Source of the DNA: Fimbriosthenelais zetlandica
Lineage: Eukaryota
Assembly: GCA_977030845.1 (NCBI GenBank)
Contig: OZ365109.1
Span: 44,144,001-44,208,000 of the forward strand
Length of the DNA stretch: 64,000 nucleotides
Direction of reading: 5' to 3'
The notes under the pieces were generated by a model. It saw only the letters and a program-made list of their open reading frames with translations, did no database searches and was not told the origin of the DNA. Both the position numbers and the translations under genes were made by a program. This document shows, piece by piece, positions 3,962-61,001 of this stretch (position 1 is its first letter; the number at the start of each line of letters is the position of its first letter).

Positions 3962-6900
3962 ATGGCAGATCCCACCAAAGGTAAAGGGGGCCTTTTTACC
4001 ACTTTTATATGAATACACATGTATAAGTACATGTATAGTAAATATTTGATTTTGGAAATTTGGGAACATTAAAATCCGTCTAACCAAAGTTAGTCAAAGT
4101 TTGTCGACAATAAACACGCATATACACTGTATAAAAGTATAGACCGTTTTCCATAGACTTATCTATGGAAAACAGCTAACTTTTGGTAGTTGTGTGTACA
4201 TGTTATATAAAATGTTTCTTGGAAATATTCAGAAGACCGAAAATGGGGCCGACTTTTGTACGACTTTACTCAGGATACGACTTTACATGGGATTCGTTAC
4301 ATTACACAGGAGAAGGCATCCTGGCTCCGAAGGTACAGATCTAATGATACATATTTTACAACAGGTTCATAGTCCAAAATACATTAGAATATGTGAGTCA
4401 CACATATATACTTTTTTTTTGCTAATCATACCTGAAAGCATTGGCTGAATATAATTATTGACTTTCGTCTTTTTCCACAATTAGGCCTAGAGATACATAA
4501 TTATTATTTCAAAAGTGCACATGTGGATGGCCTTACTATGGATACTAGTATTACTAGTAAAATTAATCATTTATCAAATTGTGTTTCATTTCCCTCCAGG
4601 GCAATATGGATAATACTAATTTTGTGCACATTCACTGGATTCTTGGCAATGATAATTGTCAGCCTTATCAAGTATTATGCTTATCGCACAACCACAAGTG
4701 TTGCCATCACGTATGAAGATCAACTTCCCTTCCCTGCCGTTACTGTCTGCAACAACAATATGTTCAGGCAAGTAATGCTAATATTAGAATATAATAGGAT
4801 AATCGGATCCTTCTGCGTAATGACAAGTTTACCATAATCTTTTACTGTACTTCTTGGTCGTTTACTGTTACTGTATACCTCTGTGGTTTTCTCAGAATAC
4901 CTAATATGCTACGACTTACATTGAATTGATTATTCAGGTTGACGAAAGCATTTGAACATGGCCTCTACGATACTTTACACGCACATTTCGAAGAGACTGA
5001 TTCTGATGGTAATTTATAGGCTTCGGATAAATATCGATTTTCTGTTCGTATACAAGGTTATAAACTACTATATTCTGCCTTTTTTGCTCTCTTACTTTCT
5101 TATTAAAATACAATTTTCCCCTCCCCTTGACAGAAATGACAGGTTGCTCACGCAAGTATCATTTTCAAGCGGAATTCTGTCTTGACGGGACCAAGGCGGA
5201 GAGGAATATAATTGAGAAATGCAAGGACAATGTTGAAAAACATTTGACTTACGTCAATGTTACTCTGAACGGGTGTCAAATACTATGTTCTGATGTTCAT
5301 GGGGATACATGTAGTAGCATTATATATGTCTGGAAGACAAAATCATGTGTGCTACTAGCTGGAAGTTGCACTTTCAAGGATAACACAAACAATAATGAGA
5401 AAAACAATGGAAGTAAGCAAGGTCCTCGCGCCAGAAGTCAGTATGACAGCGCTGGTTATCCACTTCATCCATGTGGGAAAAAGATGCCTGATATGGAAAT
5501 CTATAAGAAAATAATTTGCCATAGAGGTAATATTTTACCATTGCATTTATATGTCAATATGTCACTGATTTTATGCACAATTGTCTCACCGCTATGATAG
5601 AAAAAAACTGTAAAGGACATCTCGAGAGAATCGTTATAATTAAATGGTGAATCAATCCTTTTGATATGTACAGGACTTACTTCAGTGAAATGTGACTGGG
5701 AAGGACCCCATTGCACTGTTAGAACGAACTACATCAATGTCAGGTGATTGCACTTGGCGCGACCACAGCTTTTTATGAGCCATTTACCGATGTCCGTTTT
5801 ACCTATGCCAATTAACATAAATGGCCGCCAATTATTTTTGAGGCAAGGCTTTGGTAATGCCAAGTACCTATGTCATGTGTTTTTAATTGGCGACACCAAT
5901 TAAATCTTAAATGGCGGTAACAATTATAGGATTAGGAAGAGCCTCTTTTCACTTGGCTATACCAATTAAATTATAAATGGCGGTACCAATTATAGGATTA
6001 GGTGGGCCTGGGCCATTTAGGTTTGAAATATTTATATTATTAATTTTTTGGTTAAATATGGTTGCAAATAATTTACCACTAATTATAAAATTAAATAAAC
6101 GCACATATGAAATATTATGTACAAATTTTATTCGATAATCCCTCGAATATATATACAAAATCTAATGCATTATCACAATGCAAAGTCATCATAATAATCC
6201 AAATAATTCATCAAAAAATAACAATGGAATCTATGTATGGAATAATTAAAGCGTTATCACATAATGCAAACGAGCCTAATCAAAATAGACATGGATGACA
6301 AATGGACACAATTGTACCAAAATGTTGATACTTTCATCGACACACAATAATAAATATCTCACAAATCTAAATGTATAAAAAAATGTAAGCATTATCACAG
6401 AATGGTTTAATAAAAATCATTAGCATGAATACTAAATGTACACAGGTGCACCCAAGATTCTGAAACATTCGTCACAAGAAAATATTAAATACCTCACAGG
6501 TATTATTTTATCTAAATATAAAATAAGTAAAGTAACACCATAAAATGGTAAATAAACATAATTAACATGGAAGGTGAATACCTCAAAATATACTATAATT
6601 GATTGCCTGATCGAGAGAGCGAAGTAATCGTACATTCAAACATGGGTGAATAGCACATACAGATGTCTCAATTTTACAAAGATTTGAAGCACTTAATACA
6701 AAAAAACAAAAGTTCCATCGTCACACTAAAATATTATTAACTGAAATATAAATATACAGTAATTTAACTTTTAGATGTGATTAGATGGCTTAAATTCAGA
6801 CATAGAGGGATATAATCGGTTCTCATTTTTAAGCCTGTGTCAGAAGGTCTCATGATGAGAAATTATTCCATTACCCTGCATCATTTTCCTTGAAATGAAT

Positions 6901-9900
6901 TAACCGCGTAAAATCAGCACTTTTTAGACAGTGCCGTTGTGTTGAATGTCATTTGTTCACATAATTTATATACAATTACATTCCAATATTCCATTGAAAT
7001 TGTGCATATCGTGTGTCTCTTTTTAAACAGATCCGTGTCTCGTGTCCTCATGTCACAATAATGTCTCCAACGATTTTAAGGTTGTGTTGTGGTGCAAATC
7101 GCGTCGAATTTTACCCATTTACATATCCATACATACGGTTAAGTATTCTCATAGCATGTGTTACATGGCGACTTCAGATGTATTCCAGTTTGGTCAGCCT
7201 CATTTCAGATGATTTATGTTGGGTGAATTGTTTCCTTTACATGAGGACTCTGTAAAGAGAATAAACGAGGTGTTATAACACAATATATTAATCTTAACAA
7301 AAAGGTTCAGAACTTTGGGAATAATAACTGATATTGTTGGTCAATGAATCATTAGTAAATATAATACTAACCTGTAACCGCTGTAATGTGTGTCAGTGCC
7401 TTCTTCATGAGTGATGCCCATTGAATTGATATCAAACTTTGGATACCATCGAAACATACACGTGTACCGTTAATCTGAATTAAAAATAATAGAAATAAGA
7501 ACAAAAGTATAAGTAAATTGTCTGAAAAGTCGCCTTACGAATTGCCGTCATATATATTCATAATATTTTTACAAAAATGGACTATGGATGTCTTATACCG
7601 GACAATAAAATTATATCTCAATATATTTTAACAGTAAGCATTTTCCCTCACACTTCACACTCACAAGGAAAGCTTCACCTCCAAAATGCATGGCAGGGAA
7701 GGGGGTAACAGGTGGTAGCGTGACCTAATTATTCACCAATACTTATTAACACCTTTTTACATACTTCAAAAGTACCTTTTATATGACCTCAAAATAATGT
7801 GAACATTATTAAATGTAAGAAATTCCACAGAATTACAAAGAGAAACTTACTCAAACTCCTGTGCCTCCATCACACACATGGCCTATGTCATAGGTTCCCT
7901 GGGTCCCTCCTGTTCATTGCCTATTAATAAAACAATACCGGATATTATACTCTGATAGTTTTAAAACATAATCACATGATAAAGATGCATGTATGACTGG
8001 GGATAAATCCATGTTGCCATCTTTTTCCACACAAAGAATTGTCAAGTTGTACTGCTTGGGTCCCCCCCCCCCCTACATGGATAGATATCCCCTTAACATT
8101 CCCCTCATAGAGGCCGGTATTCCTGGGACTGACCCCGACATGCTTCCCCCCTCCCCTTCCCCTATCACTCAAACAACGATCTCCAATGTTTTCCTGTCCC
8201 TCTCTAGCTGGTAATTCAATTCAAGGTCATGCATTATCTAAAACCATGCATAGGGATTCACATGTAATTCATGAGCATGTATATAGATATTCCGTAATGC
8301 TATAATGCTATACTTACATTAATATTGCCGCAAAAGTGTCCGTTGATAATGGCGACTCTGCTTCTGGGGTACCTCCGGCTAGACAGGTCTCAATCCCGCA
8401 TTAAATAATTAAAATCTATTCTACCATAACGTTTTTGTTTGATTGAAGCAGATAAATTAATCCAAAGACCATTCCACTTTATGTGTAAATATCTCGCTGA
8501 AATTCCCATGTAAATGTATGAACAAAGCTTTAATAGTAGGCTAAATTATCTTGACCATTCAGGGAATAATGATATTAACTGCGGGATTGCAATATTAGTC
8601 CTTCAGCAGCTTGTCCGGGGGGGGGGGGGGGCACTCGGACTCGGAATCAAATATAGTACTAGGTAGTAGGGCTTGTTTTCTATCTGTTTTTAATCATTCA
8701 TGTACCCCTTTTTACATTTACAAAGAGGAACAGAACCATTTTTTTCAAAATGTAGTGGCCTTTGGTGTTCCTTGAGACTCCGGGCTGGTACTTAAAACAA
8801 AAGACTGCCGATGAGTAACCCCCCACCCCCCACACACACCCACCATCTTCCAAACATGGAGCCTTGTTTGCCCCACGCCTATAATCTCACCTCGCGTCCC
8901 CTCTTTGTATAGTCCTATTCTGTCATTATGTTTTAACTGCGGGCTTGAAAATATACCTGGAGCAGCATGTAACTGCATGTCCGGGGGCACTCGGAATCAA
9001 AGATGGTACTAGCTAGGGCTTGTTTCCTTTCTGTTTTTAATCATACATGTACCCCTTTTCACATTTGCAAAGAGGAAAATTTGTTTGTTTTCCAAATTTT
9101 GTGAACTTTTATGTTGACATTAAAATAACCCTTTTCCTTGTGAGTCTATGGCGCTTGTAGCAAAACAAAAGACTGCCAATTAGTAATGCCGGGGGGCCAA
9201 AACCTTAATGGCTGAATTTGTGCGACAGAAGCCAGCCACGTACGATCGAGATTATCACACCCATAGATGTGAGACTGGTTTCACTTCAGCTGAATACATG
9301 CTTTTGTCACCTTTGTGTCAGGTGGCATGTATATGAGCCGAATACACACGTCTGGTGGAACAAAAATAATACCTATTTCTGTTTTAATTGGTAAATTTCC
9401 TGTACTACGTTACTTTTATTTTTTGTACTGTTATTATCATCATCGCCATCTTATAATGTTTATATTGCTGTACATATCATAATGTCGGTTTCCCATGTAT
9501 CATTAGTGTAACTATAACTTTCGAATTAATTCAAGGAATAAATGATTCTATACATGACATGTATTTCACAGGTTATACCAAATTTCATGGACAGTAAAAT
9601 AATTACTACCCAAAATTATTTCCATATTGGCTGTGATAACCTAATAACTTGTATTAAAGCTTAACCCCAAATTCGCACATTAGGGGCGACCCATATTTCG
9701 CCCCACACCTAGCTATATCCCCGATTCTATAGTCATGTTCTGTTAATATATATTTCACACATCATTCACGCACCCCAAAGTGTGAATCAATGTAATTGAC
9801 TATGCTTTTCACATCTAGAACTTGGCTTGTGGGACTCAACCCACACTAGCTGTAATCTCCTATGCGGGGTGAGGCGGGCGGGTGGGTGGCGGGAGGGGGG

Positions 9901-12900
9901 GGGGGGCTTATGCTAATGAGGTAGGGTAGCATTCATAGCCTTATGTTTGTTTGAATTAATTGAAGGCCAAGTATTCAAGGAAATACCATTGAAATGCCAT
10001 TGAATGTCAATTGACATAAGTGTAATTTTAAATGGCCGAAATTGGGCTAAGCGATGCGCCCCGAGAACAATAGAATTTCACTTGGCTAAATTAGGTATGT
10101 GAATTCTACGTGACATTGCGTGTTTTTTAATGGCGGTCACTTAGTTTTAATAGGATTTCTAACAGTGTGCGAATTTGACATTTTGGCAACAGTGAACGAA
10201 AAGGAGTCATTTCAAGTTGTTGAAGCAAGTTTAAATCCCAAATATGATCATACCCTTGAAACAAGTAAGATTCTTTGATGACTCAGTCTTCATTGAAGTA
10301 ATCTGTTGGCTCAACTGCACTTCATGGAGATGACTTTAAGAGCCTGTGATCCAAGATGGAGCTCAAATCTCGCGAGACCCCTGTTACTTATATAATCAGG
10401 TTTATGTCTTTAGGGATTATGTTAGGGTTAGGTTTATATGTTAGGGGGAAGGTTAGGGTGAGGTTTGGTTAAATACTAGTACCTATAAAATGACAAATTA
10501 TAACGTTACTCGTTAACGTTAACGTTATTCCCTTGAAATTATTCCGTTGCTAAGCGCCATGTGTCGCGAGACTTCTGGCCGCCATCTTAGATTAGGGCAG
10601 TATACTATAGGCCCTTCAAGTGCAGTTGTACCAATCTGTTTACTATATATTTAGGTTCGAGGCATAATAATTATATATGCAGGTTGAACTCCCCTTCCCG
10701 AACAATGACTGCAGTTATTCAATGCTGCAAGTGGGTAGGGGGTTAGGCCTATTTCTTTGTTAATTCCCATCAAAGCTTATCTATATATAGTCTTTCTCAG
10801 CTCAACCTGACTCCCCTTAATTGCAGACACCAGAACTATGCTTATATGGAGTCTGGCTATTAAGTTGAGCTGAGAAAGACTATACTATAATACTAGTTGC
10901 TTATCATCTAGTTACGCATACCAGGCCTATTTTAAACAACTAGCAGAGACGCCTTTTTACTCCTTTTCAGGATATGGACACTACCTCAGACTGCCCACCA
11001 CAAGGAACGCTCCAATAGATTCTCAAGCACGTCTGACACTACGATATTCCAAATTCGAAGGTCACTGCCTGGAATTTTATTTCCAGCCGACAGGTGATGT
11101 CCCCGATAGAATTTACATTCATCAGATCGATGACAGCTTTGGAGTTCACCTTGTGGCTGCATACGAATTAGGTTTTAAAAGGGACCAGTGGAATCGTGCA
11201 TTCATACAGTTGTTTGATGGCATCTACATGCTCGAGTTAAAGGTTGAAAGATCTAATGTGAAAAAATCCGAAACATCAGGGATAGCAATTGATGACATCG
11301 TTGTAGACAGATGCTTGCACTTCAGTAAGCAGAAAGCAAATTGATTAGTACACTACTGGCTTACAAACTTGAAATAAGGCATTAGTTGTTATATCTTAAA
11401 TTCAATATACATATACCTATCAAAACTATGAGCTCTCCAATTGTTTATAGCTGAACGTGAATGTAAACGCACAAGGACAGGCATAGATTACATGGGTTTA
11501 AAGATGACAACTGTCAGTGGTAAAACCTGCAAGACTCCATGTCACAATAGGAACAATGACCAGGGTGGTCCTCATTGTCAAGTGGCAACAGCAGATGCGA
11601 CATATTCAATTACAGAATATTGTCACATCCCTTTTTGTGGTGAGTAGAAATATTGATGAAATGGTGCCATATAGGACAAAAGAATTTGTAGAGAATAGGC
11701 TATAAGAAATTTTAAGTTTAGGCAATTGCATGGTATATAGGGAAAACCCCTCCTAAGAATCTCAGTTGACTTTTGTAATCTTTAGAAGTTAGTAACTGCT
11801 AACCAAGATAGTAACTTGATTACATTTCCACATCCAGAATGTCAGAAGGATCAGTTTAAATGCAGTGACGATTTTTGCATACCGGGCAATCTCACATGTG
11901 ATGGCAAACCTGACTGTGAGGATGGTTCTGACGAAACGTTACCCTGTGGTAATACTTTATTACTATCTCTCAAGTATTCAATGCATGGCTCTTAGCTTTA
12001 TTTGTTTACCCTCGAATATACTCAAACCGGTATTAAGGTGCTCACACACTAATCAGTTTCTGTCTCCATCCGATAGCTGTCCGATTCAATATTAATTTTC
12101 TTTTCACATCAAATGCTTGTAATTTGAACATTCCGTTACACCTAGGTAAGGGTAACCACTGACACAATCTCAATCATATATTCTTTAGCGGATAAAATGA
12201 GTGTTGACTGTGAGTTTTCGGATGAATATCTCTGTGGTTATCAATTTCCCGCGAGGTCTGCACCGTGGAGTAGAAAAAGACCAGTTGATTATGTGGACAA
12301 AGAACAAAGGATTTCTAATGATCATCTTGGTTCATCATTGGGTGAGTTTATGTCAATTTAGTCATTTTTATATTATGGAAAAATAGGAATTTTGATATGG
12401 ATTTCTCAACAATCCTACGACTTGAATATTTGAGCTCCTTGAGCAAATACATATAATGATTATTACTCATGATGTTTATTTCCTAGGATATTTCATGGAC
12501 CCGTATACAGGACTACTTCAAGAAGGCGAAAAATCTTTGCTGGTTTCTCCCTTCACGACAATTGACAATAATTCGACCTATCTCACATTCTTTGTATATT
12601 TCCGTAACACTACATGGGGTTTAGAATTATTCGCAGTTCCGGAGAGTTTGTCTGGCTTCTTTTTCGAGGAGATTCCATATAAAAAGACTAAAAAACGAAA
12701 TGGATGGGTGGAAGAAATGGTACTGCTACCGGAAGGATCATATAGAATCGTCTTTCAAGCATCTGCTGGACCTACATTCAGATCGGAAATTGCTTTGGAT
12801 GGGATAAAGCTAGTTCGTGTTCAACGGACAAAAGGTGGTGAACGTGTGGAAGTACCAACAATCTCATTTGAAGATGAAGGTATATTATTATTAACAACAT

Positions 12901-15900
12901 CTTTTATTCATCTTCCTCATGGGAAGTGAACTTTATGCATTTTTATGAATATTTGATGATACAGAAATTCCTTTATAAACCTTGATAAATTATTACACAA
13001 TCGAGAGTCGCAGCATATAGCAGCCAACATTACAGCCACTGTCACCACCCACCTCCCCTAGCAGCAGCTTCGACTACTAAACGTGCACTTCAGAGACAAC
13101 TGGAGGGAATCAGCATCAAAAGCATGGGATCAGCATAGCCATCAATGATAGTGCATTTAGATATTATGACAACTAGTATAGTTAAAAGCCGATAGGCTGG
13201 TGACGTGTATTAGGTCTACTGACCGGTTTTCGGCAATGACAAAGTGATTGAATCACGGCTAAACAAGTCTCGTTTGTTTCACTGCCTTCAGGCCGCATCC
13301 CCATACATTCTAGTGGGCCTGCGCTAACAGTCTTGTCAATTTTTTCCTCACCTCAAAATTATTGTTGAAATCAGTCTGCAGCTCCTTCATGCTACACTCA
13401 GCCGAGTCTGCCTCAATGCTGTACGTATATCCCTCCACCTCCTCCGAGCACAATCCTCGTATATATATCCTGGTAACCGGGGTCATAAGTATCTAAGACC
13501 TGCCACAATATGGATATGAGAAAAACACTCAAATCCACCATATGATTTCCTCTACACCAATCAAGTCATGGTCCAATGATTTTCTTGTGATTGCCTTCCA
13601 AACTGTCTAGGCCTATACATAGGGCTACCTGTACTCTTGGTTTTAATTTCATGTTGGTTTATTATGAGATCGCAAACAATGCATGGCTACAAATAGTACA
13701 ATCACTCTCTGTATAGAGAAACGGAAAGGTTGAAGAAAACAGGATTTGCTGGATACAGATGTCAGTCTGACAATGGGCAAATTAGCATGCATGCAAATGA
13801 ATTAATATTTGTAAATTATATATTAAGTTTATTATTAAAATTAGAAATTAAAAACTAAATTTCTCATGCAGGTGATTACAACGGAAGCTGTTACTTTGAT
13901 GGTGCAGACCTATGTGGATATACACAATTCTCCTGGTCCGGCAAGGCAGAGTGGCAGACCTTTCCTATCGCACTAGCGGAACTGGCATTTCAGGCCGCAA
14001 AAGACGGTTATGGAGAAAGTAGTAAGACTGTTTTAAATAAATATCAGAATAATTGTTATCTTACACGGAACATGGCATTACGCCAGTAGATTAGGGGCCT
14101 GTTTCAGCGTAGAAAATTTCCCATAGAGTTAGCATTGCTAACGGTTGTTCTGAAACAGGCCCCTGCTCAAGCCTGATCTCTTCAACTATGGGTTTCACGG
14201 GAGTTACAATGAAATGATGATTTTTTTAGCTGAACGAGAGTACTACACAGACGCTTCTGGTTGTTTCGCGTCTCCCGGTTATCCAGACACTTATGATCGG
14301 GACGAATACAGAACCTATGTGATTGGAGGTGCATTAGGGACAACCGTAGAGCTTGAGTTTATTGGCGATTACGATGTAGAAGAAACTTATGACACTATTG
14401 AAGTAAGTCTTTTTCTTTTTCGTTATAACCAGGGTGTGCTATAAATAGGGCATCCTTAGTGTTTCTGCGGTCCTGTGAAATTTCACAGTACGCATCACTA
14501 GTACGCCCCTATTATTAATATGAATTAATGAGGTTGACAAACACTGATAAAGAACATAATATTATACAGTAAATGTTTATGACAATCATGGTGAACTTGT
14601 CTGTTACTTCTGAAAATGGTCTTGTCCTTATGAAACCACTATGTTCATTCACAACAGTTATGGGAGTACATCAATTATAGCTACGTACACATAGTGACCT
14701 ATAATCAGAATGTGCGGCCGCCAAAATACAACTCGATATCATCTCTTGTGGTACTGGTATTCGCATCCGATGCAGAAAACCAGTTGCAAGGTTTTGAGGC
14801 ATGTTACAAAATAAATGGGTATAATGAAACAGGTGAGTCATAAGCTAATATAATTTATATAAAATTTGTTAAGTTTGGTTAATAGACTCAAATCAGTTAA
14901 TTAATATGAGGGCATGTTCTGTCAGTGGACTCAAATCTAGCATTAGAGAATTAAAAGTCTGAAATTACCCCATATAGCTTACAAAACTTGTTTTAGTAAC
15001 ATTTTACATGTAATAATTTTCCTTTTTGTCCAATATGATTATAGATTATGCGCTTCTACTTGTGGTGACCGGACCTATATCATATAATGCCGAAATAATA
15101 CTAACATCTCCAGAGCTCTATGTAAAGACAGAACAATGTGCCTACATTGCTGTGCAAACCTTGACTACTCATGCGTAGGTTTATCTTTATCATTTCTGTG
15201 GCTATATATATCGCCCTTGAAACTGACTTCTAAGGCAGATGCGGCGGTATATATAGCTGCTACATCTGCTGCACTAGCTGGGGACTTGCATAATTATTTT
15301 GCAAGTGGTCCAGCAAGACTGGTATCTAACGTAATTAGAAAAGTGCCACATCTGCCACTGAAAATCGGACACAAGGGCTGGCCACTACAAAATTCTCACA
15401 ATTCCTATAGGCATAGATTCCATAGGATACCCCCGAACACCCATCCTCAAATTATAGCCTTCCCATTTTTTATCAGGCCTTTCTAAATGATGTCATTATA
15501 ATAACCATGGCCTGTGAGTGAGTAATTTATTGATAATAAAAAATCATTTTGTCTTATAGGGTATGCACCATATCATCGCACGGCCAGGAAGATTGTGAGA
15601 CTATAGAATATCTGGGAGGTGGAATGACGTTACAGTACGACTTTTATTATTATGTAATACCAGTCGGGACACAGTTCTTGAAACTCGTGTTTGATACGAG
15701 TACCGTCTGGGGACAGTCAATTTATGCTGCTATCGAACATATGAATATCTACAACCAGTCTTGTACATCTTTTGGTAAATATTATATTAGTTTTGGCACA
15801 ATGACACTACATGGACTTTACCATAACATACACCTACCATACAAAAGTTTAGACTGTTGTGTTATGTAAGAGGGGGATTGTTCATTATATCTAATGGGCT

Positions 15901-22414: not shown

Positions 22415-22619
22415 TATGATAGCAAGGAAAAAATGCTGATAGTTATATGAAAGTGAATGCAAATGTACATATTGGCATCAGTTTTAATCTCTTCCCATCC
22501 ATACTGAAAGTTCCCCTCTATACACATCACAGCTGTGCTGACATTATAGTAAATTTTCAATTACGAAACTGTATATAGCCTGCAATAATGCTTTTCAAAT
22601 GATAATGAAACTGCCACAT

Positions 22620-23377: not shown

Positions 23378-23910
23378 ACAGTAATATTAAATGCATTTTC
23401 CAATCAGACAATACATTTACCCATCAACCTCTTGCCAGAGAGCATTAGATGTCTTGAATAATTTAACTCGACGACAGATTTCTTTGGTGACATGCACTTT
23501 AGCAAGTCATGCGTGTGAAGATCGATGCTCTATGGTTTGAAACCTTTGATGGATAACTCGATTCTCTTGTTTTCTTTCGCATACTGTCATTATTGACACC
23601 CTTTCAATGTGCAAATTTGGATGTTTGATGATGACAGAGACAAAAGCTTCGATCCTGATAAGATCAATCAATGTCCCTAGATATTTCTACTTCTGTTAGC
23701 AGATGCAAAACCTGTTAGAAGATAGATTTTGAATTAACCCTTCTGTTCAGGTGGGGAGTCAATCAATTTCAAGGGGTTTAGCGAGGTATAGTGTCTGGTG
23801 GCCGAGTCATTGTTAGATCTATAGGCTGGTTCAGTGTTGTTCTCGACACCGGGAGCTTCAGAGCGGGTCGTTCCCTGGTGCAGCCATGGATGAAACAACC
23901 AAAGCTAAAG
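23378..23910 (+). promoter_or_regulatory. Duplicated upstream/promoter region of paralog 2, homologous to about 3389-3980 upstream of paralog 1
   Basis: Shared blocks, e.g. gagagcattagatgtcttgaataatttaa, gacaccctttcaatgtgc.aatttggatgtttga, tcgatcctgataagatcaa, gagcttcagag. Confidence 0.6.
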
Positions 23911-40559: not shown

Positions 40560-40701
40560 GAAATAGAGGCAATTTACAGATAGCAATAATTATTATAGTT
40601 TCCCCTTTAACATCATTCATTGTCAATGGTGCCACTGTCAGCTATGTGTCGTCAGCTATATTTCGGCTTCCTGTTTCTCACCAGTAAAAGTGTGTGAGGC
40701 C

Positions 40702-50500: not shown

Positions 50501-53500
50501 GTGGATGTTTTAGTTCCAAAGGTAGTCCAAGGATGGACTGGAATAAGAAGGAGGGGGAGCTATGTAACAAATTGCCGGGATGCCAAGACATTCAAAGAAA
50601 CAATTTTCAGGGGTCTAGTATCTTGTGCTGGATAGATATGCATTTCCATATTATATTATTATTACAAATCTTGTGATTAATGATATTTTGACACGGACTG
50701 TCCAAAGGAAATGTTTAACCATTTTGCGGGGGAAATATAATTATCTTATTTTATGTGTTACATTTTAAACAAAATTAATTTTTGTGAACAAACTCACGTT
50801 TGCAAAGTTATGGATAGTTATTTTGATATTATTCAAATTTCTTAATTTATTATAAGGGTTCGCCCAGGAGTGCGAAAACAAAGGAGGAAGGAATGTTAAT
50901 GTGGACATGTATAATGTAATTCTTTTCTTGAAATTTCTATGTTTATTATAAGGGTTCGCCCAGGAGTGCGAAAGCAAAGGAGGAAGGAATGTTAATGTGG
51001 GGATTCAGAAGTTTTACTTTTAATGCTTGATTACAATGTGATATAGGGGTTGGCATCTTGTTTGTGTAATTGGCATGTCTGAGCTTGCAACTTGACAATG
51101 GCCAGCATCAATGCCAGCATTATAGCTTTGTCAGCTTGTAACAAACAAAGGGACAATAACATAAAAAGGGGAAATCTGGGTAATATTGAAATGGGCCAAT
51201 GAGGGTTAAGGGTATAGATGGGAACAGTTTAAAAAGGCATGCTGTAGGAACAATCAGGGTCACTTGTGATCCACCCGTGGCAGGGGTTTAAGGTCACTTG
51301 TTGACTCTCAACTCCTTGAGAACCAACTCTACCCTCGATTACTCTACTGTCTTCAGCTACCATATATTCTAGGGGGATATAGCTGGGAAAGGAATACAAC
51401 TAGGAGTATATCTTTGGACATTGTGTATCAACTGTATCTTTGGACATTGTATATCATATATGTTGGATTTTATATAAGGCATAAATAAATAAGTGGCAAG
51501 CCATTAAGCATACGATCATTGGTCGTCTTTAATATACAGAGGTCAGCCCGGTATATTTACACTGGTATCTCAGGTGGGACAGGTGGGCTGGAGGTGTACG
51601 TCAATACAAGGCAAGGCAACGACCAAGCTCAGGTGTGAAGGTGGAGGCAGGTGTGAACAGGTGTGAAGGTGGGGCCTGGTGTAGTGTTATTTTTCTCTGG
51701 TACGGCGATATAACGTCCGCACAACACACCAACACCCTGAGGAGGGGCACACTGAAAATGCCATGGACAGCTTGGGGATTGAACCGCCGACCCTCTGATC
51801 AGATTACGCCTGGTTATTTATTTTGTGTAACATGAATATCTAAGTAATGTTAAGTTTGAGTAAGAACTGACAAGTATTACATACTTGTCCAATCTTCTGT
51901 CATCTTTCACTAATAAGTAGGGGGTAATTGGCCTGGGGGTAATTATCCTACAGGGGTAGTAATCCTAGGTGGTAATTGGCCTGGGGGTAATTATCCGGGT
52001 GGTAAATATCCTAGGGTGGTAGTCATCCTAGGTGGTAGTTATCCGGGTGGTAGTCGTCCGGTAGTGATTGTCCTAGGTGGTAGTAGTCCGGGTGGTAATC
52101 GCCCTGGGGGGTAGTGCGCCTGTCACCCGCCTGGTTCACTCAATCTGAAAAAAATATATTAAGAAATAATGAAATAATCATCTTTATGCATATATGTTGC
52201 GTAATATCTGGGCGGTTAATTAAAATTTATACTTACTGAATAGGCCTACTATACGCCTAAATGGGTCAGAGGAAATCTAGGCTAATATTTCTAAATTTAA
52301 AATCACTGAATTGGTCTAAGTGAAGGCCAAAACATAAGAGCTGAATGAATTTCTGGGTAGACCTAAGGTGCAAATGTTACCAATACAGGGAATCGAACCC
52401 TGGTCTCTCACATGCTAGGCAAGCGTTCCAACCACTGGGGCCATACATTGTCACCTCTTGGAACATCCAGGTGGCTGGTCACGTTTCTAAAAACATCAGC
52501 TAGGCCTACCTGCTGTCATAATGAAGTAGGCTTACGTGCTCATGTTGTGACAGAGAAGCTTCTCTCTACACAAACCCACAAAGTGCGGCCTACTGTCAAC
52601 TCGTGGATGATGGAGCATATATTTTGATTCTGGTACAAAACCTGTGAACTTGCACCTTGCTTAATTACTACGTGCACTATGAATACAGACTGTCTAAGGC
52701 AATTATTAGAGCTTTACATTTATATTTAGATGTGTTTTTTGCACATTTTCGCGTCACCAGTGTCAGAGGTGACTCGATCGCGTGCAGATCTCCGCTATTT
52801 TGGTTCTGCATGTGTCTCTAACTTGTTCTAGTACGTATTTTTACCACGTCATCCGCATCCGAGTTCACCAAAGACATCCTAACAATGTTAACTAACATAT
52901 TATAATGTTACAATTCAACAGTAGGCCTACTGACCTTTTATGATGGATGTTTTGATTTTTGAGTGAGGCAGCGGTCGGGCGTGCGCGTGTTCCTCCGCAG
53001 TCAGCTCGGGCGCATGTGGACGTCAGTCTGTGGGCGTCGATCCATTTTGAACTCATCATACTATGGAAACGCAAATGTAACCATAACTCCCGAGATGCGA
53101 AACCGGGAAATTAGTCCCGGTTCCGGACTTCGGGAAGCCGAAACCCGATATCGGACTTCGGGAACCCGACTTCGGCTTCCCGAAGTCCGATATCGGGTTT
53201 CGGCAACTAGCAGGGTAGACCCGAGACGCGAAACCGGGCCCGAAATCCGAAGTCGCCATTGAAATTGCACTGTAAACACAAAAGCCGAAACCCGGCAACT
53301 AGCAGTAAAGACCCGAGATGCGAAACCCGATATCGGGTTTCGGCAACCTGACTTCGGCTTCCCGAAGTCCGGAACCGGGACTTATTTCCCATTTCGCATC
53401 TCGGATTTCGTCCACTTTTAGGCCTCGCCTGAATCCGCGTATTTTCAAAAAATTGTATCGCGGTTCCGGGCTTCGGGATGCCGAAACCGGACTTCGGCAA

Positions 53501-56500
53501 GACCCGAGATGCGAAACCGGGTTTCGGCATTTTTTTCCAGTGCTATTTCAATGGCGACTTCGGGTTTCGGGCCCGGTTTCGCATCTCGGGTCTTGCCGAA
53601 ATCCGATATCGGGTTTCGGAAACCCGATTTCGCCTTGCCGAAGTCCGGATTCGGGAGTAAATTGCCGGTTTGACATCTTCCGAGTTATGGTTACATTTGC
53701 GTTTCCATATTTTTCCCCTCCTTATCATACCTATGAAGAGTTCTAGGCCTATAGAGCATATTGATCAGCAAAGATTCTACTATATACTATATAGTAGAAT
53801 CTTTGATATCAGGCCTTCCAGTGTTGACCCACACTCGGTCACACCAGAACGGCACACGAGGGACCAGATTGGACAGTTCTGCAGTAAATATCCGATCAGG
53901 CAGGTGCTGCAGTAAATAACCGATCAGCGATTTTTTTTTTTTTTAAAGAAAAAAAAACAAGTTTATGGGTCTTTTTTTGTCATAGAGGGGAAAATCACTA
54001 TCTATGGTGTACGTCTTCATTCTGACTCGGTTGACTCTTGAAAATTTTCAATATTAGAAAATATTTAATCACTGGTGATTAATTCTAAATTTAGATTATT
54101 CCATTGGGGTGACTGTGGATTCAACTATATCTGAGTCAAAAGAGGCCAGCCTTACCTCTCCGCTACTGGAAATAACTAAGGAAAGTTGCCTGGTCGCCAT
54201 GATCCGTTCAGTAGTGAATTTCGAGTAAGCCTTTCTCTCCGCCATTCTCAATTATTAGGCCTAACATTTTATATATTTCCTAAAATATGGCATAAATATT
54301 TTTCTCACATCAGTAGGACCTTTAGGCCTACCGTACCTTCAAAATAATAATTAGGCCTAATTAAATCTTATTTTAAGGATATGCATTATCAATGCTATTG
54401 GAACTTCAAAGGAAGAATGCACAGATTATCCCCCAACTGAAAATGTGAAAAAACCCGTTGATCTTTACTATCGACTTAAAGTGGGAAGTTACTACATCAA
54501 GTTTGGTTTTACAATAAGTTATGAAGAAAAAATTCAAGTTTATGCTGCACTGGATGAAATAAAGATCATTCAAACAGAATGCTCACTCCTCAGTAAGTTT
54601 TCTGAAAATATTGTTAATCTATAGTCCATCACTTGAATTAATAATTAGGCTAGGCCTATATTAAAGCATTCATGGTAGCCTATTGAAGCATTTAAAGATT
54701 TTTTTAGATTTTACCGAAACCAAGTTTTTTGTTCACTGTTCTTTCTAGATGAAGTGCAAGATGCAACTGGCTCATGCGATTTCACGGAACAAAATGCATG
54801 CGGATACAGGGAGACCCAAGGCATATGGACTGTCTACACAGCTTCAAGAGGTATCTTCCACAAACTTGTCAATTCCTTAATATACCTTTTAGTATATAGT
54901 ACCTTACAGTAATGCCTTGAACACACCAGAGCTTCTACTACGTTTTTAGAGAAACCTGCTTTGGCGTAGGCCTATTTCTTTGTACACTGCTAACCAAGAG
55001 AGTACGTGGCTAAATCATATAAATTTTAGGCTATGTGACTCAAATACAAAATCTAAGCAGCGCTCGATTGCGGGTTTCTCGGAAGTCACATGACAAGAAA
55101 TGTCATTAAATTTAATCTTCACCTATTTTTCAGCAAGTACCCTCATGGCGAATGATTATAATTATATGAGGTGTATGTCTGCTAATGAATGGACCTCTTA
55201 CAGTTCGCAATCACCTCCACCATTGAACTCTTGGCTCTCCAGCTCATCATGGTACTCTGGCTCATCATCCAGTTACTACACCTCATATCCCAGTTATTAT
55301 AGTAGTGGATATAGTAGTAGCTATTATTCTAGCACCAGCAATTCAGGATCGGATTACTATTCATATAGCACCAGTTCTTCACCAGATTATTCCTCGTCAT
55401 CAGACTATGGTGATTCTTCAGAAGCACACTATGGTGAATCAGATTATGTTGAACCAGACTACTCTACCAGTTATGCTTCTTCAACCATCCCTTCAGAATC
55501 ACAATATTATGGATCTTCATACTCCACTGATTATGGTGCCATCTATTCCTCATCGGATTATTCTTCCTCAACTGCGGATTACAGTTATGATTATCCATCA
55601 TATTCTACTAGTTATGACACCTCGTCGACGTCGTCACTTTCGCAAATTCAAGAACCATCCACATCAGATTCTGATGTTATCCCAACAACAACAATGTCTA
55701 CAGATATGTTTCAAAATAGCTGGATAATAGGCAGTACAAAAGGCCCTAGTCAGGGTTCAGAAGGTCAGTTTCTTATCCCCGCGACCCTTAAAAAAGTTTA
55801 CATGCTGTCAAGTATCAGTCTTCAAGTATATGTCCCGATGGACAATGTCAAATGCTTTCTCGAATCTACAAATCTGTGTTATCTTTCTTATTTATAGAGG
55901 GGTAAAATTAAAAGCAGCAGTGGATAATGTGCAATGAAACCTCCCCAACTCCGGCCCACCCCGACCACATTTAAAATTAAAATTTGTAATTAAAATTGAG
56001 GATCTATGAGTGAATATGTCTTGGTGAAAGCTCAAGATTAAGAACATCGGTTTTGAGCCATGTCATACTCTGATGTATTTCTCATTGCAGAAAATGTTTA
56101 TTATTGTCAATGCAAAAATGGAGGGCCATGTCAAATGGAAAGTCCGAAATTTTCCATCGCTTCAGACTCGTGTCTACAAATCATGTTTGTGATGAATTCT
56201 TGTAATTACACAAACATCACCTTGTATTTCTTCGATAGTCTCAGTGGAAACTTTTTAGGGAACATTGATGTGTCAGGGTCACTGGCACAAAGAATTATGC
56301 AATTGGACTTGAAGAAAAATGTTGCACAATACAGCATGTTGGCACAAGCATACGGGGCAACCATTGCGCTTTATAAAATTCAAATCGTTGATGGAAACTG
56401 TATAGTAAATGGTAAGCAGCAGTATTTTAGTTTTATAAATGGCCAAGTCAACAGAAATCCCATTGTGCATCAAGTTATAATGCAGGTTGATATATACATT

Positions 56501-59500
56501 AGGCCTACGCTGTGAGGCAAAGAAGCTTCGTACTGGATATGATTTGATTCTTGATAGGTACATGTATGAAGATAATGTCAAGTTCTGAACGTTATTCCAG
56601 ACACTATTCTGGACGTGAGCACTGAGTTCAAAGTCCCGGATGATGATCATAAAACGGGCGATGCTCGTACCACTTCCTCGCCCAACCAAGATAATGCAAA
56701 TACTGGTACAGAAGGCAGCACACCAGTCTTTGTTGATAAAACGACAAAGCGCTCAGTTTCAGGTATATTTCAAATTCTAATATACCATTGATATATTCAA
56801 AATAGATTTTCATAGCAACAGATTCTCCAATCCGATGCCATCCGATCCCCTATCCTAGCTGGTGTTGTACAATAAAATCGCCAATGGCGAGGGATCGGCG
56901 AGGGTGCCCTCGCGGTGCGATTAAATTGTTGAAGTGCTGTTTTTTTCTAAAAAGTGCTTGGATAACTGATTGTTAGTGCATTGTCCAAGCACTGTTTTCT
57001 TAAAAACAATGCTTGGACAATGCAATTGCTCCACGAAGGTATCCTCGCCATCGTCGATTTTATTGTACAACAGGGGGCATGTTTCAATTTTGTCCACGAC
57101 CTTTGGTTAGTGTTTAATTCAATTATTTCGAATCTTTGCAGATGATGTGAACATCAAACAGTTCTTGGAAGCCTCCAAACATGAATATGTAGATTTTATC
57201 CATATGTAAGTTTTCCTTTCATTCAAGCCGTTTCATAAAACAGATCTAATGTAATAAAATTATATTATGTAGAATATTAAAGTAATAGTAAAGCTATGAA
57301 CTATGGATCCTGGTACCGATATACATGTACTCGATATTCTATGTAGAGTCATTGCCTTTCAGATGTTCATGGAAGGGAGGGCCTTGTGATAAAAATCACT
57401 TCGTTGAGCAGTTCACTGACATGGGCCTTTGTTATACATTCAACGGTAACACCTCACTAGAGTTAAAATCATCAACATCAGGTAAACTAATATTCTAATT
57501 ATGTATACTATATACACGGTGCATTATCCCACGAATGGGTTTTTATTATTTGCACACTGTTTTGGTGGTTTCCGTTGACTATTGCGTCAAGAAATAGTGC
57601 ATTATTTTGACCACATTCTACTGCGATGAAGTCGTACCAATCACAGCGTGTACTCGTTCGAGGTCTAACCACTGTATAACACCCTACTATATGCTTTTGG
57701 AAAATACTAGGTTCAGATCAAGGCCTTCAACTTACACTCAATTTGGCCAATTATGACCGAGCTGGTTCAGAACTTACTGACTCAGGAGTGATGGTATGTT
57801 TGTACTTTGGATTAAATTGTGAATTGTTGGAAAATCCTGAACTCGCGTTTTCTATAAAAACAGACTTAAATTATAGATGCAAATGGTTTTTGTAGGTGTA
57901 TCTTCATGAACCAGAGAACATACCAATGGTTAGTGAGATGGGATTTGCTGCACCAGCTGGACTTCATACTCTTGTTTCAGCCAGCTACTCGGAGGTAATT
58001 TGTTTGTTTGTATTTTAATGGAGTCTTCCATTAAAGTTGGACATGTATTGTTATTATTGTGTTCGAATCCAGGTACGAATTTCTCAAAGGTTCGTATATA
58101 GTATCGCACCAGAAAGAAAAAGTCACTATAGACGAAGAATTAATGATCGATTTTTGTTTCGATTTTACAGACTAATAACCTTAAACGGCCATATGGAAAC
58201 TGCACTGCGGAAAATAATCTGGAGTATTACCAAGGAATGAATTACACAATGGAATATTGTAGGACAGAATGTAAGACAAAGGCAACTGGTCTGATCTGCG
58301 GGTGCAAGCATGCCTTTATGTCTGGTAAGTGAATAATTACATGACAGGGATCACTTGCACTCAAGCAATCAATGTTCTCATAGGTGATGAAGTAACAAAG
58401 CTTGATGATTTAGTAAATCACCGATGCCATGATCTCATAGCATTCCTAATTGCTTAGAAGTGTAGAAATTCTGACTTCTTTTTCAGATGTAGCACCTTTC
58501 CCTCTTTGTAGCATGAGTGACTACATCAGATGTGGTCTAAATTTCAAAGGTCAGTGCAGATTAATTAAATTATACTTTCTCTTTATCTCCCCCCCCCCCT
58601 TCTCTCTCTCACTCTTTGACCATCTGTCTGTTTGTCTCTATCCAATAACTATCTAATCTTTATCCCTCAAAGAAACGTTCCTCGAATTCATGTACTTGTC
58701 TCTGATATGCAGGAGGTCTCAATGGTTCCTTATCAACATGTGAAAAAGAAAAATGCCAAGTTGCATGCAAAATGATCAACTACCAAATTATGTCATCATC
58801 TTCAAAGTTGACAACAGTGGATCTGAATAATCGAGTTTCAGAGAAGTTCTACTCTGCACTTGAAATAAAAAATAGGGCTGATCCAACGCGCATCGTGTCA
58901 ACAGTGAGAAATTTAGATAAACTGATTCTGTCCATCAACTACTATAAGGATATGGCTGAAAGGCAAACTGGTACAAGTCCAATGTCCAGGTATACCAAAG
59001 TAGTTAAAGCCATGAATGAAATCCAAACACAGATAGTGATTGACTGTCGAAAAGTTTTGGATGACCTTAAACACATTAGATCTGTTTACATGGACATTTT
59101 TGGGTACAGAATCAATGCCTTACATTATAAGCTTGTTGAGGTACTCAATTATGCAAGGTCCATGGTACAACGAAACAGCCAGGGTGATTGCTATGGTGGT
59201 ATGAATGACAACTTGACCATTCGACTTTTGAGAGATGTACAAAAGTCTTTGTATGATGTAAAGGATGGAACAGAAAAAGAGTTTCTCAATAGACTTAGGA
59301 ACTACATGAAGTCATATAACACAAGCAATGTCGAAGGACTCTCAGGAGAAGAGATTGCTAACCTGATACCTGATAACATCGGCCTAAATAATTCATACGG
59401 TTACTGCGTCGCCCAAGATGTTTATTCTGAATTTCTAGACATCTTCAACAATGTCTTTAAAGGGGTATGTATGGATGAAGGTCAGTACCTGAATTTTGTG

Positions 59501-61001
59501 AAGGCTTTTGATGAGCTGAAACATTGTAATGAAGAGTTTGGGCTGGTTTTGGATAAAATTGATCGTGCCATTGGAGAGATGAGAAAATTAGAAGGACCTG
59601 AAATGAGTGACTCTTACGAACTGGACTTCAACTTTGAATTTGAATCACAAAACCTGACTAAACAATTTGATAAGTATGCAGCTCTTTCCCAAAGATTCCG
59701 TGCTGGAAAGATAACAAAGTCTCATCTCTCCGAGGACCTGGATTTGAAAAATATTTTTTTGACTATAAACCAATTTCGGCAATTCCAGAATAGTATTGGA
59801 TCAAAAATCACTGAGAAACTGATGGAAAGTACCAAAACCCTTGAACATGTGTCCTTGGATTTATACAACGCCGCAGTAGAAGCGCTGGTAGATCTTCAAA
59901 CGTATTATAAAAAGGAACATTTGGATTTGGAAAAAAGAGCACGGGCTTTGTTAATATGGCGAAAACCAGAATTCTCAACTGACACTGAAAAACTCATTGA
60001 ATTACAATACGAGGACAGCACGAGGCTGTGGTCTCCAAATAGGAATTTTTATACTTTTGTGAAGGTAAGGTGAACCATTTAATAATTTCTTTGGTCAGCA
60101 GCCTCTCTCAAACACGTATGAACTGTAGACTTAGCATTGGCAATATTCCTTTTGAAACGGGCTCCATCACTCCAATCTACATTGAGGAAAAATAATCTGA
60201 ATTGTGAGTAGGACAACGATTAAGTCGGGAAGGAGCTGTTATTTTCAATAATTATCTGAAATAGTATAGCAGTGCATCACTAGTCTATAGCATATTTAAG
60301 CCCTGCAATAATTATTGAACAATCTCATCATTTTCCTAGTCTCAGGCAGCTTCCGGAATCATAAGATTTGTAGTGAAGGAGGTATTTCAACCTCTGAGGA
60401 AAGAACTCAATGACATCACATTTGAGCTAAACCAGGAGCTTGGTGATGTGCAGATGGCACTCGATGATATCAAGAAAGAAATGGAAGCATTTCAACAAAG
60501 TCAAACAATGGACAAAGACTTTGTCAGGTAGACAAACCTTAATCCTAAGATTCTGATTACGATAACTATATTAAGCTTGTGCCAATTATTCCTCTGGTTT
60601 TTCTTCCTTTCAGAAATAACTTCCTAAAGTTAGATGTTTACTACGGGGAATTGAAAAAGGAGATTGTTACATTGAGTGTGGGTTATACGATGGCCTCATT
60701 TTGGAGTAAGTACACTTGATACGGTACCTAAAGAAATAATAGCTAGCGGGTAATAGCACATGTATTATTTGCTATGTTGAATATTTGCGATAATTAAACC
60801 AATTTAATTGAATAATTATACTCTTCAGGTGACCTTGGTGGGTACCTTGGCTTACTCCTAGGTGCCAGCGTTGTTACTGTGTGTGAATTTCTCGACCTAG
60901 TTTTCTCAAATGCCATTCACATCCGAAAGCGGCGGACACAAGTTGAAGAAATGAACTTGACACAGAACAAGAAAAATGACACTAATCTGGACTGGTTTTA
61001 G
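41549..61001 (+). CDS. Giant multidomain DEG/ENaC channel subunit, paralog 3 (more divergent, apparently intact, about 2,160 aa)
   Basis: Exons: 41549-41567, 41728-41827, 42636-42803, 42927-42997, 43279-43635, 43721-43870, 43957-44313, 44470-44658, 44988-45098, 45321-45467, 45571-45963, 46064-46192, 46409-46575, 46743-46920, 54095-54224, 54378-54592, 54749-54850, 55134-55763, 56091-56411, 56601-56762, 57142-57205, 57363-57481, 57711-57793, 57896-57994, 58171-58324, 58487-58549, 58713-60064, 60340-60527, 60614-60705, 60829-61001. Sum 6,483 nt. Motifs TTLHG, FPGVTICN, FTDMGLCYTFN, RPYGNC, SDLGGYLGLLLGAS. Confidence 0.92.
42226..42445. mobile_element. Palindromic MITE copy
   Basis: Near-identical core to 35167-35399. 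Confidence 0.7.
43279..56762 (+). CDS. Paralog 3 exons 5-20: PAN-MAM-kringle-LDLa-MAM-MAM(CUB)-MAM(Ser/Tyr linker) insert
   Basis: LTLKGCMTLCSMIHTEDCSKVVYGWKEKQC; SCLEFYY, GFALDDL; GIDYQG..SGKTC..GPSC; CQSSEFRCSDGFC..CNGNADCIEGEDE; DLAIDNIQI; GNIKSPNYPDLY..VNFTTN..VGFSAEF; AALDEIKI; CDFTEQNACGY. Confidence 0.85.
48833..50635 (+). CDS. Gag-like protein with long acidic tail and 13 copies of a 12-aa repeat
   Basis: PGVFTG..VKQFVNDCDAW..LGDDAYDWY resembles the Ty3/gypsy capsid N-terminal pattern (P-x2-F-x-G; L-x-G/D-x-A-x2-W); no protease/RT/integrase. Confidence 0.7.
   Translation: MCAMWGSRQPMEPGVFTGNGDYDVKQFVNDCDAWAEYHGDKTGMQIKFNLGDWLGDDAYDWYLYVLRRQHLPWKDIKENLILKYSSNMLKERDDLLYFKEVLALMYSLAPTEDSAAKIQNARAGISFALHKINRQIEISSFVDPDPEASDYARRCAFAREEKPNVPREIKILPEMWRPFVDEVKGPEEEKVIQSVSPLAENSPEVASQDKIRDEPVNEHVISEVQDKEHFIPDYHVENPVISDEQDEGLDGTQDNNRGTEQKEGLNDTQKDEVDKEEVDTKEDELNDQQEYERHNELEGQDNEQLDEINNRQVDRPEDKQDDIPGNTQNDEFHNVTLNDELIDEPNDTLNDELIDEPNDTLNDELIDEPNDTLNDELIDEPNDTLNDELIDEPNDTLNDELIGEPNDTLNDELIDEPNDTLNDELIDEPNDTLNDELIDEPNDTLIDELIDEPNDTLNDELIDEPNDTLNDELIDEPNDTLIDELIDEPNDTLNDEPNVTLNEELKNELDEKRDHQMCDKQVDKHFDKKVDDSDIMIMVSGENDGSQDQQPCIMGSVDVLVPKVVQGWTGIRRRGSYVTNCRDAKTFKETIFRGLVSCAG
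49832..50299 (+). repeat. 36-bp coding minisatellite, 13 full units (NDTLNDELIDEP)
   Basis: aatgatacactgaatgatgaactgattgatgaacca in direct tandem, with no spacers. Confidence 0.95.
51919..52128. repeat. G-rich degenerate minisatellite
   Basis: Repeated GG(T/G)GGTA(A/G)T...CC(T/G)(A/G) units of about 15-16 bp. Confidence 0.75.
52381..52446 (-). pseudogene. tRNA-Ala(AGC)-like pseudogene or SINE head
   Basis: Reverse complement GTATGGCCCCAGTGGTTGGAACGCTTGCCTAGCATGTGAGAGACCAGGGTTCGATTCCCTG: D-arm-like region, anticodon loop CTAGCAT, T-loop GGTTCGA; acceptor stem degenerate. Confidence 0.5.
53062..53709. mobile_element. CpG-rich foldback element with modular subrepeats
   Basis: TIR TATGGAAACGCAAATGTAACCATAACTC / GAGTTATGGTTACATTTGCGTTTCCATA (terminal TA may be a TSD); interior built of CGAAACCCGATATCGG, GACTTCGG and CCCGAGATGCGAAACC modules in both orientations. 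Confidence 0.8.
56858..57074. mobile_element. Palindromic MITE copy
   Basis: Near-identical to 35167-35399. Confidence 0.75.
58713..60527 (+). CDS. Paralog 3 exons 27-28: helical knuckle insertion
   Basis: ORF 58772-60073; alignable to paralogs 1/2 (EIKNRADP, DIFGYR, LDFNFEFESQN, IWRKPE, LWSP). Confidence 0.85.

Follow-up and report, generated by a model that had tools for sequence, protein, structure and literature searches.

Can an ion channel subunit of the DEG/ENaC family carry its own receptor within the same polypeptide? The gate of DEG/ENaC channels responds to protons, peptides, proteases or force, which act through the finger, the thumb and the knuckle of the ectodomain; the route by which force or large ligands act on it is debated, and the tethers that have been proposed are separate proteins. 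The question is raised by a locus of Fimbriosthenelais zetlandica, namely a window of 64,000 nt on contig OZ365109.1 (assembly GCA_977030845.1, positions 44,144,001 to 44,208,000 of the forward strand; all positions given below count from the first letter of this window), in which three tandem genes, g1, g2 and g3, are predicted to encode giant DEG/ENaC subunits. Each predicted protein combines a channel core with two large insertions, a cassette of extracellular interaction modules in the finger and a long helical block at the knuckle. At the level of the sequence, this giant architecture of a channel core with two insertions is very likely to be real. Taken as a whole, the locus is probably best explained by three tandem duplicates of a lineage-restricted DEG/ENaC subfamily, whose members would be two-pass subunits with receptor-like inserts.

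The window is AT-rich (~38% G+C) and does not contain runs of N. An all-vs-all comparison of its six-frame open reading frames (ORFs) revealed three collinear coding regions on the plus strand, at ~4.1-22.6 kb, 24-39.5 kb and 41.5-61 kb. The pieces of regions 1 and 2 are 75-95% identical to each other, and the pieces of region 3 are 25-55% identical to those of regions 1 and 2, in a single frame per piece. As judged by this comparison, the regions are three paralogous multi-exon genes, two of which are recent copies and one of which is old; a search for extra gene copies near the edges of the window found none. Automatic exon chaining produced too many tiny exons and read through dispersed intron repeats, and was therefore discarded and replaced by curation, in which exon boundaries were fixed manually using AG acceptors, GT or GCAAG donors, and a phase and protein-alignment position common to all three copies. 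The curated models of g1, g2 and g3 have no internal stop codons, and the length of each coding sequence (CDS) is a multiple of three. At the amino acid level, g1 is 76% and g3 37% identical to g2, and exon boundaries and phases are homologous among the three genes although g3 is so diverged. The original prediction had given the limits of the cluster as 3962 and 61001, and both, the start codon of g1 and the stop codon of g3, were reproduced exactly; the phase-consistent reading frames that it had described were recovered as well. Its picture of three 30-exon paralogs of ~2,100 aa fits g1 (2156 aa) and g2 (2087 aa), but has to be corrected for g3, which consists of 28 exons and encodes 1906 aa.

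All acceptors of g2 are AG, and its donors are GT except for GCAAG at 26068, 36203 and 38314. In total, GC donors are required in four introns, namely the three of g2 (the equivalent positions in g1 are 4768, 19338 and 21550) and one of g3, at 43636. These donors were accepted, though flagged, because each of them is a GCAAG whose counterpart, at the same codon position of another paralog, is GT. Upstream of the start codons, a stretch of ~140 nt is 82% identical between g1 (3455-3595) and g2 (23433-23571) and has no counterpart upstream of g3; the duplication therefore took in the 5' flank.

The channel core was identified by searches of Pfam and the PDB, for which the exon or ORF pieces of g2 were used one by one and not the whole spliced protein. 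The Pfam family ASC (PF00858) matched these pieces at profile positions 21-80 (E 2.6e-15), 149-193 (E 1.8e-7), 232-262 (E 0.0055), 265-335 (E 1e-6), 400-431 (E 0.12) and 431-454 (E 7e-5); these pieces occur along g2 in profile order. The exon encoding the first transmembrane segment (TM1) matches ASIC5 (E 2.4e-9), as well as ASIC1/2 and ENaC, and is aligned to residues 43-100 of chicken ASIC1. The alignment of the beta-ball exon 22 to chicken ASIC1 begins at residue 173, and the best match of this exon is ASIC2 (alignment 173-207). For the thumb exon 25, which is aligned to chicken ASIC1 284-329, FaNaC is the best PDB match (323-368), and all 21 PDB matches of the exon encoding the second transmembrane segment (TM2), aligned to chicken ASIC1 433-456, are DEG/ENaC channels. 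When searched singly, exons 24 and 29 and the first part of exon 27 had no PDB match. Exactly two strongly hydrophobic 19-mers are present per protein (residues 43-61 and 2041-2059 of g2), and g3 possesses one additional weak peak within a MAM module. Furthermore, g1, g2 and g3 share the motifs HGIR at residue 25/26 and FPAVTVCN or FPGVTICN at residue 84/85, and the filter motif GAS in the context LGLLLGAS(V/I)VTV; the beta-ball motif CYTFN, the motif P(Y/H)GNC and the CxxxCK pattern of the thumb are also present. The glutamate of TM2 is kept, and the degenerin position before TM2 is still occupied by a small residue, which we take to be Ala according to the alignment with ASIC1. The core had been described as complete, and indeed ASC pieces, two transmembrane segments, HG, FPxVTxCN and GAS were all found. 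Judged by these matches, g1-g3 are members of the DEG/ENaC family whose pore hallmarks are intact.

The first insertion, a cassette of ~1000-1150 aa, interrupts the finger. It is encoded by exons 5-20 of g2 and lies between exon 4, which contains helix alpha1 (LTKAFE.GLYD.L), and exon 21, which contains helix alpha3 (F...A.H.Y.DFIH). The cassette exons are all phase 1-1, except for an inner 1-0-1-2-1 run that encodes CUB and MAM3. The exon for the LDLa module is 111 nt long in all three paralogs and preserves a calcium cage (DCEDGSDE, DCVDGSDE and DCIEGEDE). The CUB domain (PF00431) extends over two exons, which match profile positions 5-61 (E 8.4e-7) and 70-110 (E 0.011). Once the CUB exons are removed, exons 12, 15 and 16 together align with MAM2 over 144 columns with an hhalign probability of 92%, which supports a CUB domain nested in a MAM domain via a MAM-internal phase-1 intron; this alignment to MAM2 is the only support for MAM3. 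MAM4 is a weak call (Pfam MAM E 0.049), with an hhalign probability of 94% for MAM3 versus MAM4. The PAN call is also weak: the match to PF00024 has an E value of 8e-4 and a score of 19.6 bits, under the Pfam cut-off of 21.4, the AlphaFold2 model has a predicted local distance difference test score (pLDDT) of 35, and the exon has no sequence match in the PDB. The kringle-like exon matches kringles in 27 of 27 PDB hits, in two pieces (residues 7-25 and 49-81); however, it lacks ~23 central residues (kringle 26-48), and the match to Pfam Kringle (PF00051) is partial, covering 20 residues. Linker exon 18 of g2 is rich in Ser, Thr and Pro, and the linker within MAM4 is mucin-like. The corresponding exon of g1 (16467-16700) consists of a Pro-rich 24-nt tandem repeat, PPxPPGSE, in ~9 copies, whereas the g2 linker is Ser/Thr-rich instead. 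The domain order of g3 is the same, but separate linker exons 18 and 20 are missing; its second CUB exon (46743-46920) is diverged and was located by motif alone, with GFxAxFY retained. Thus, the proposed order PAN-MAM-kringle-LDLa-MAM-MAM(CUB)-MAM(linker) is supported as an order, with the reservations that PAN and MAM4 are weak, the kringle is truncated and g3 is devoid of the linker exons. As far as exon phases and domain matches can be read, the cassette shows exon shuffling of phase-1 modules within a channel domain, with the CUB domain nested in a MAM domain as one instance.

The second insertion, a helical block of ~500 aa, is located at the knuckle. Exon 27 is a single open exon of 1415 nt (1349 nt in g3), in which the palm motif C....C...C...SY.I is followed by ~440 unbroken residues; exon 28 contributes ~60 further residues, to which exon 29 joins the beta11 strand NFLEVDIYF. 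Since palm strand and helical block share one open exon, the helical block is physically part of a core-coding exon. No Pfam family matched the helical exon (504 aa). An AlphaFold2 model of the block, based on an alignment of eight sequences (pLDDT 75, predicted template modelling score 0.62), consists of a short beta-hairpin followed by helices of up to 63 residues. A comparison with PDB folds returned generic long-helix proteins only (TM-scores 0.1-0.2), and shape and feature searches of the ESM Atlas found nothing beyond generic long helices. The best match in AlphaFold DB, among 2.3 million fold clusters, is K1PHY3 (678 aa), annotated as 'Amiloride-sensitive cation channel 4-B', which was missed by HMMER. 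Residues 122-553 of K1PHY3 match residues 32-433 of the block with a Foldseek probability of 1.0, but with a TM-score of only 0.25 and 12% identity; K1PHY3 may therefore be regarded as a lead toward annotated relatives, not as proof. Mapping on chicken ASIC1 residues places both insertions, as had been proposed, at identical positions in the finger and the knuckle of all three copies. The two helical exons are separated by an intron of 262 nt in g2 and 275 nt in g3, as compared to 99 nt in g1 (21550-21648); the g1 intron is in frame and stop-free, its retention would add 33 residues, and it is bounded by a GCAAGT donor at 21550 and a TTTCAG acceptor that ends at 21648.

Selection on the insertions was assessed from the ratio of non-synonymous to synonymous substitution rates (dN/dS), calculated by the Nei-Gojobori method on the curated codon alignment of g1 and g2. 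This ratio is 0.38 overall, 0.26 for the core, 0.40 for the cassette and 0.37 for the helical block. Among the modules, it is 0.06 for LDLa and 0.17 for PAN, with LDLa, PAN and MAM1 spanning 0.06-0.3; the two linkers are near neutral (0.6-1.4). Between g2 and g3, synonymous sites are saturated. Both insertions are in frame in g3 and are therefore older than the g3 split, so that the earlier claim of insertions that predate this split and are under selection is borne out. Relatives outside the cluster are few: when 1.84 billion representatives were searched exhaustively with HMMER, the helical exon had only five (P0001-P0005). They originate from three other samples, each of them is an ORF call confined to one exon (327-495 aa), and ASC exons are located downstream of the helical exon on their contigs. 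These homologue searches used open pieces of at most 580 aa, a length window that falls short of 2000-aa relatives; repeat searches with alignment A1 and with P0002, in the same length window, returned only P0004 and P0002 themselves. On contigs L003 and L005, MAM2-like and MAM3-like exons, the ASC core and the helical exon follow one another in order on one strand; one MAM exon has a precomputed Pfam MAM match and another an E value of 6e-4. On contig L006, a 336-nt phase 1-1 MAM exon is followed by a finger alpha3 exon and a phase 2-1 beta-ball exon, and these by the helical exon and TM2. At 25-45% identity, the exon structure where the cassette meets the channel is thus preserved across organisms, and on the evidence of these contigs both insertions predate the split from the other organisms. 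The coordinates of all features are compiled in Table 1.

Table 1. Features of the DEG/ENaC gene cluster, with positions counted from the first letter of the window.
Feature	Position	Strand	Description and evidence
g1, ATG to stop	3962..22414	+	CDS 6471 nt, 2156 aa; 30 homologous exons, exon 6 split by transposon
g2, ATG to stop	23886..39472	+	CDS 6264 nt, 2087 aa; 30 exons; cleanest copy
g3, ATG to stop	41549..61001	+	CDS 5721 nt, 1906 aa; 28 exons
g2 exons 1-4	23886..26601	+	Cytosolic N-terminus with HG, TM1, beta1 strand FPAVTVCN, finger helix alpha1; Pfam ASC 21-80
g2 exon 5	26761..27156	+	PAN/apple-like, phase 1-1; Pfam PAN_1 weak, conserved Cys pattern
g2 exons 6-7	27303..27909	+	MAM1; Pfam MAM (PF00629) E 3.4e-10
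g2 exon 8	28184..28372	+	Truncated kringle, 63 aa, 6 Cys, phase 1-1; PDB kringles only
g2 exon 9	28624..28734	+	LDLa, 111 nt, phase 1-1; Ldl_recept_a (PF00057) E 4.1e-12, profile 2-37
g2 exons 10-11	29047..29957	+	MAM2; Pfam MAM E 4.3e-7
g2 exons 12-16	30637..33136	+	MAM3 (exons 12, 15, 16) with nested CUB (exons 13-14, 30968-32221); Pfam CUB, hhalign
g2 exons 17-20	33397..34834	+	MAM4 (exons 17, 19) split by linker exon 18 (33663-33935), then linker exon 20
g2 exons 21-26	35512..36763	+	Finger alpha3, beta-ball, palm, Cys-rich thumb; Pfam ASC, ASIC2/FaNaC PDB matches
g2 exons 27-28	36899..38763	+	Palm strand of ~30 aa (CxxxxCxxxCxxxSY) continuous with ~500-aa helical block
g2 exons 29-30	38922..39472	+	Palm beta11-12, TM2 with GAS filter motif, short C-terminus; Pfam ASC, PDB
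g1 exons 27-28	20135..21836	+	Helical block; 99-nt intron 21550-21648 between the exons
g3 exons 5-18	43279..56411	+	Module cassette; high-scoring segment pairs between paralogs, curated boundaries
g3 exons 25-26	58716..60527	+	Helical block; 29% identity to g1 over 471 aa, 38% to P0001
Insertion in g1 exon 6	5713..10165	.	4453 bp, in the N-terminal part of MAM1; alignment of g1 and g2 exon 6

Whether channel and modules are made as one protein depends on the transcripts. A single transcription unit is favoured by the common strand and phases, the short introns, the selection on the cassette and the cross-species collinearity. The introns that separate exon 4 from exon 5, and thus the channel from the modules, are only 125-281 nt long, too short to house a second promoter or an exon for a signal peptide. 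Moreover, a start codon, a signal peptide and an extra transmembrane segment were looked for within the cassette of the models, and none was found. The strongest competitor assumes that splicing omits the cassette (exons 5-20) in most or all transcripts, in which case the main product would be a channel of ~950 aa with the helical knuckle only and the giant form would be minor or tissue-specific. Such splicing would preserve the frame, as the end of exon 4 and the beginning of exon 21 are both in phase 1 and each cassette exon or exon group is phase-symmetric; the helical block, by comparison, cannot be skipped in frame, since the phase-1 end of exon 26 does not fit exon 29, which requires phase 2. 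A cassette that is hardly ever used is, however, difficult to reconcile with the purifying selection acting on it (dN/dS 0.40, and 0.06-0.3 for LDLa, PAN and MAM1), and with the fact that it is in frame in a paralog of 37% identity and adjoins ASC exons in other organisms. Lacking a start codon and a signal peptide, the cassette must be selected as a part of the channel transcript, and predominant skipping is considered unlikely.

Another possibility, which we regard as slightly less probable still, is that full-length proteins are made but function mainly as adhesion, scavenger or matrix receptors, with the channel part serving as an anchor or trimerisation scaffold and not as a gated pore. 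Arrays of MAM, LDLa and CUB modules are typical of endocytic and adhesion receptors, and most of the mass of the predicted proteins is non-channel. In addition, the C. elegans EGAS proteins ('EGF plus ASC'), the nearest precedent for a channel with added modules, were silent when expressed in oocytes (PMC10424705). A part that serves only as an anchor, however, would hardly be expected to retain HG, GAS, the small residue at the degenerin position and the glutamate of TM2, and the dN/dS of the core is the lowest of all large blocks, which points to selection on the channel. That the models fuse separate, nested or decayed genes and the long ORFs are an artefact of splice choice is highly improbable, for although the models are comparative predictions only, include an exon of g1 that is split by a transposon and need GC donors four times, three independent stop-free CDSs of 5.7-6.5 kb share the same phases, dN/dS is below 1 in each domain block, the introns of 125-160 nt between channel and module exons are too small for the start of another gene, and order and phases recur in other organisms.

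The reading as giant receptor-like subunits nevertheless has to be weighed against several observations. The architecture of transcript and protein is predicted from genomic comparison; likewise, conductance, trimerisation and ligand binding are predictions from sequence. Exons 5-20 are jointly phase-symmetric, so that an isoform without the cassette is possible. PAN and MAM4 are weak domain calls, and the helical block is without an informative fold relative, the TM-score of its best AlphaFold DB match being only 0.25. Four GC-AG introns are unusually many, given ~29 introns per gene, and the EGAS proteins yielded no currents in oocytes (PMC10424705). Finally, g1 may be an inactive, recently damaged copy. 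The alignment of its exon 6 to that of g2 stops at 5713 and restarts at 10168, and the insertion in between has 11-nt inverted ends (CACTGTTAGAA ... TTCTAACAGTG, read directly), is devoid of a long ORF and looks non-autonomous. The final CAG of the insertion constitutes an in-frame acceptor at 10166. On this alignment, the frame of g1 is kept only via a non-consensus GC donor at 5713 or via cryptic in-frame splicing, one option for which would be to join exon 5 directly to the acceptor at 10166.

Other repeats are found in the introns of the cluster. Intron 14 of g3 harbours an element of the long terminal repeat type (47974-51561), whose direct repeats begin at 47974 and 50894, i.e. 2920 nt apart, and are 100% identical over at least 300 nt; its interior contains an ORF of 600 aa (48833-50635) that matches no Pfam family, and 36-nt tandem repeats (NDTLNDELIDEP). 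Dense direct and inverted repeats, which are open in several frames on both strands, occupy positions 52950-53770 of the same intron. Introns of g2 and g3 contain scattered members of a short repeat family in either orientation (26230-26423, 35086-35470, 42112-42530 and 56800-57153). Downstream of the cluster, the minus strand contains an intronless ORF of 595 aa (62176-63963) that matches no Pfam family.

How might subunits of this kind work? The predicted ectodomain comprises ~1800-2050 aa, and the proteins are about four times as large as usual DEG/ENaC subunits. We assume that the subunits assemble as trimers, thereby forming a Na+-permeable pore, and that the inserts in the finger (between alpha1 and alpha3) and the knuckle act as a built-in receptor. 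The modules might bind an extracellular macromolecule or be pulled by an anchor in the matrix or on a cell surface; binding or pull would then move finger and knuckle, and this movement would in turn bias both the palm strands and the gate. As a rigid stalk or crown, the helical bundle could hold the modules in place above the channel. Finger and knuckle form the peptide site of FaNaC at the top of the ectodomain, and the ENaC finger carries protease-sensitive inhibitory tracts. A receptor role is suggested because the inserts sit on precisely these elements, the peptide-binding elements of FaNaC and the protease-tract elements of ENaC. Gating by a ligand or tether through the finger and knuckle inserts is put forward tentatively, as a possibility with the odds against it. 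Somewhat more doubtful is the full proposal of self-contained receptor-channels, in which force or a protein or glycan ligand would open the pore via modules in cis and a helical stalk, so that a tether of the MEC-4 type would be fused into the channel chain.

A comparison with characterized systems helps to delimit what is special about the cluster. The ASICs, including ASIC1/2 and ASIC5 (BASIC) (6ave, 9mkz), resemble g1-g3 in the two transmembrane segments, the motifs HG, FPxVTxCN, GAS and CYTFN and the Cys pattern of the thumb, and provide the best PDB matches; however, they measure only ~500 aa, to which g1-g3 add the cassette at about residues 120-150 and the helical block at about residues 385-410 of chicken ASIC1. 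FaNaC (7yvb, 8on7) is the best PDB match for the thumb exon, and its peptide-binding elements, finger and knuckle, are those that are remodelled in g1-g3; FaNaC itself has modest finger insertions, without MAM, LDLa, CUB or kringle modules and without a helical block. ENaC alpha and gamma with their GRIP domain (6wth, 9blr) also possess a lineage-specific gating insertion in the finger, and ENaC chains are among the PDB matches. In contrast to the cassette, the ENaC insertion is a beta-sheet structure of ~100 aa and not a chain of autonomous modules, and ENaC lacks a knuckle insertion.

With regard to added modules, the EGAS proteins are likewise DEG/ENaC subunits with extracellular interaction modules. 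Compared by description, their modules are of the EGF type and sit at another position of the chain, the proteins are much smaller, and MAM, LDLa, CUB, kringle and helical block are absent. In the touch channel MEC-4/MEC-10, the pore is thought to be coupled to the matrix proteins MEC-1, MEC-5 and MEC-9, which contain EGF/Kunitz or collagen modules. There, the matrix-binding parts are separate proteins that act in trans, whereas the candidate modules of g1-g3 are in the channel chain itself; no homology of the modules is implied. K1PHY3 is similar to g1-g3 in that it is an annotated DEG/ENaC protein with a fold match to the helical block, and is probably a partial model. The same module types, encoded by phase-1 exons, are known from MAMDC4/endotubin, MALRD1, the enteropeptidase heavy chain and neuropilin; these proteins, however, are single-pass or secreted and contain no channel, whereas in g1-g3 the array is inserted into a channel domain. 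A literature search combining 'degenerin' or 'ENaC' with MAM or kringle found no paper that joins such channels and modules. The statement of the original prediction that no characterised DEG/ENaC protein of this architecture is known is thus supported, within the papers searched, for MAM and kringle modules, but needs to be softened in view of EGAS and K1PHY3 as partial precedents.

If the reading as giant receptor-like subunits is correct, the cluster would represent a natural experiment, in which ~1100 aa of binding modules in the finger and a helical bundle of 500 aa in the knuckle have been fused with a pore in one polypeptide. Deletion or swapping of modules could then directly test how movement of the top of the ectodomain opens the pore. 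If the cassette is skipped, the locus would still reveal something new, namely a DEG/ENaC channel with a 500-aa insertion in the knuckle that is conserved across organisms and nearly absent from protein databases.

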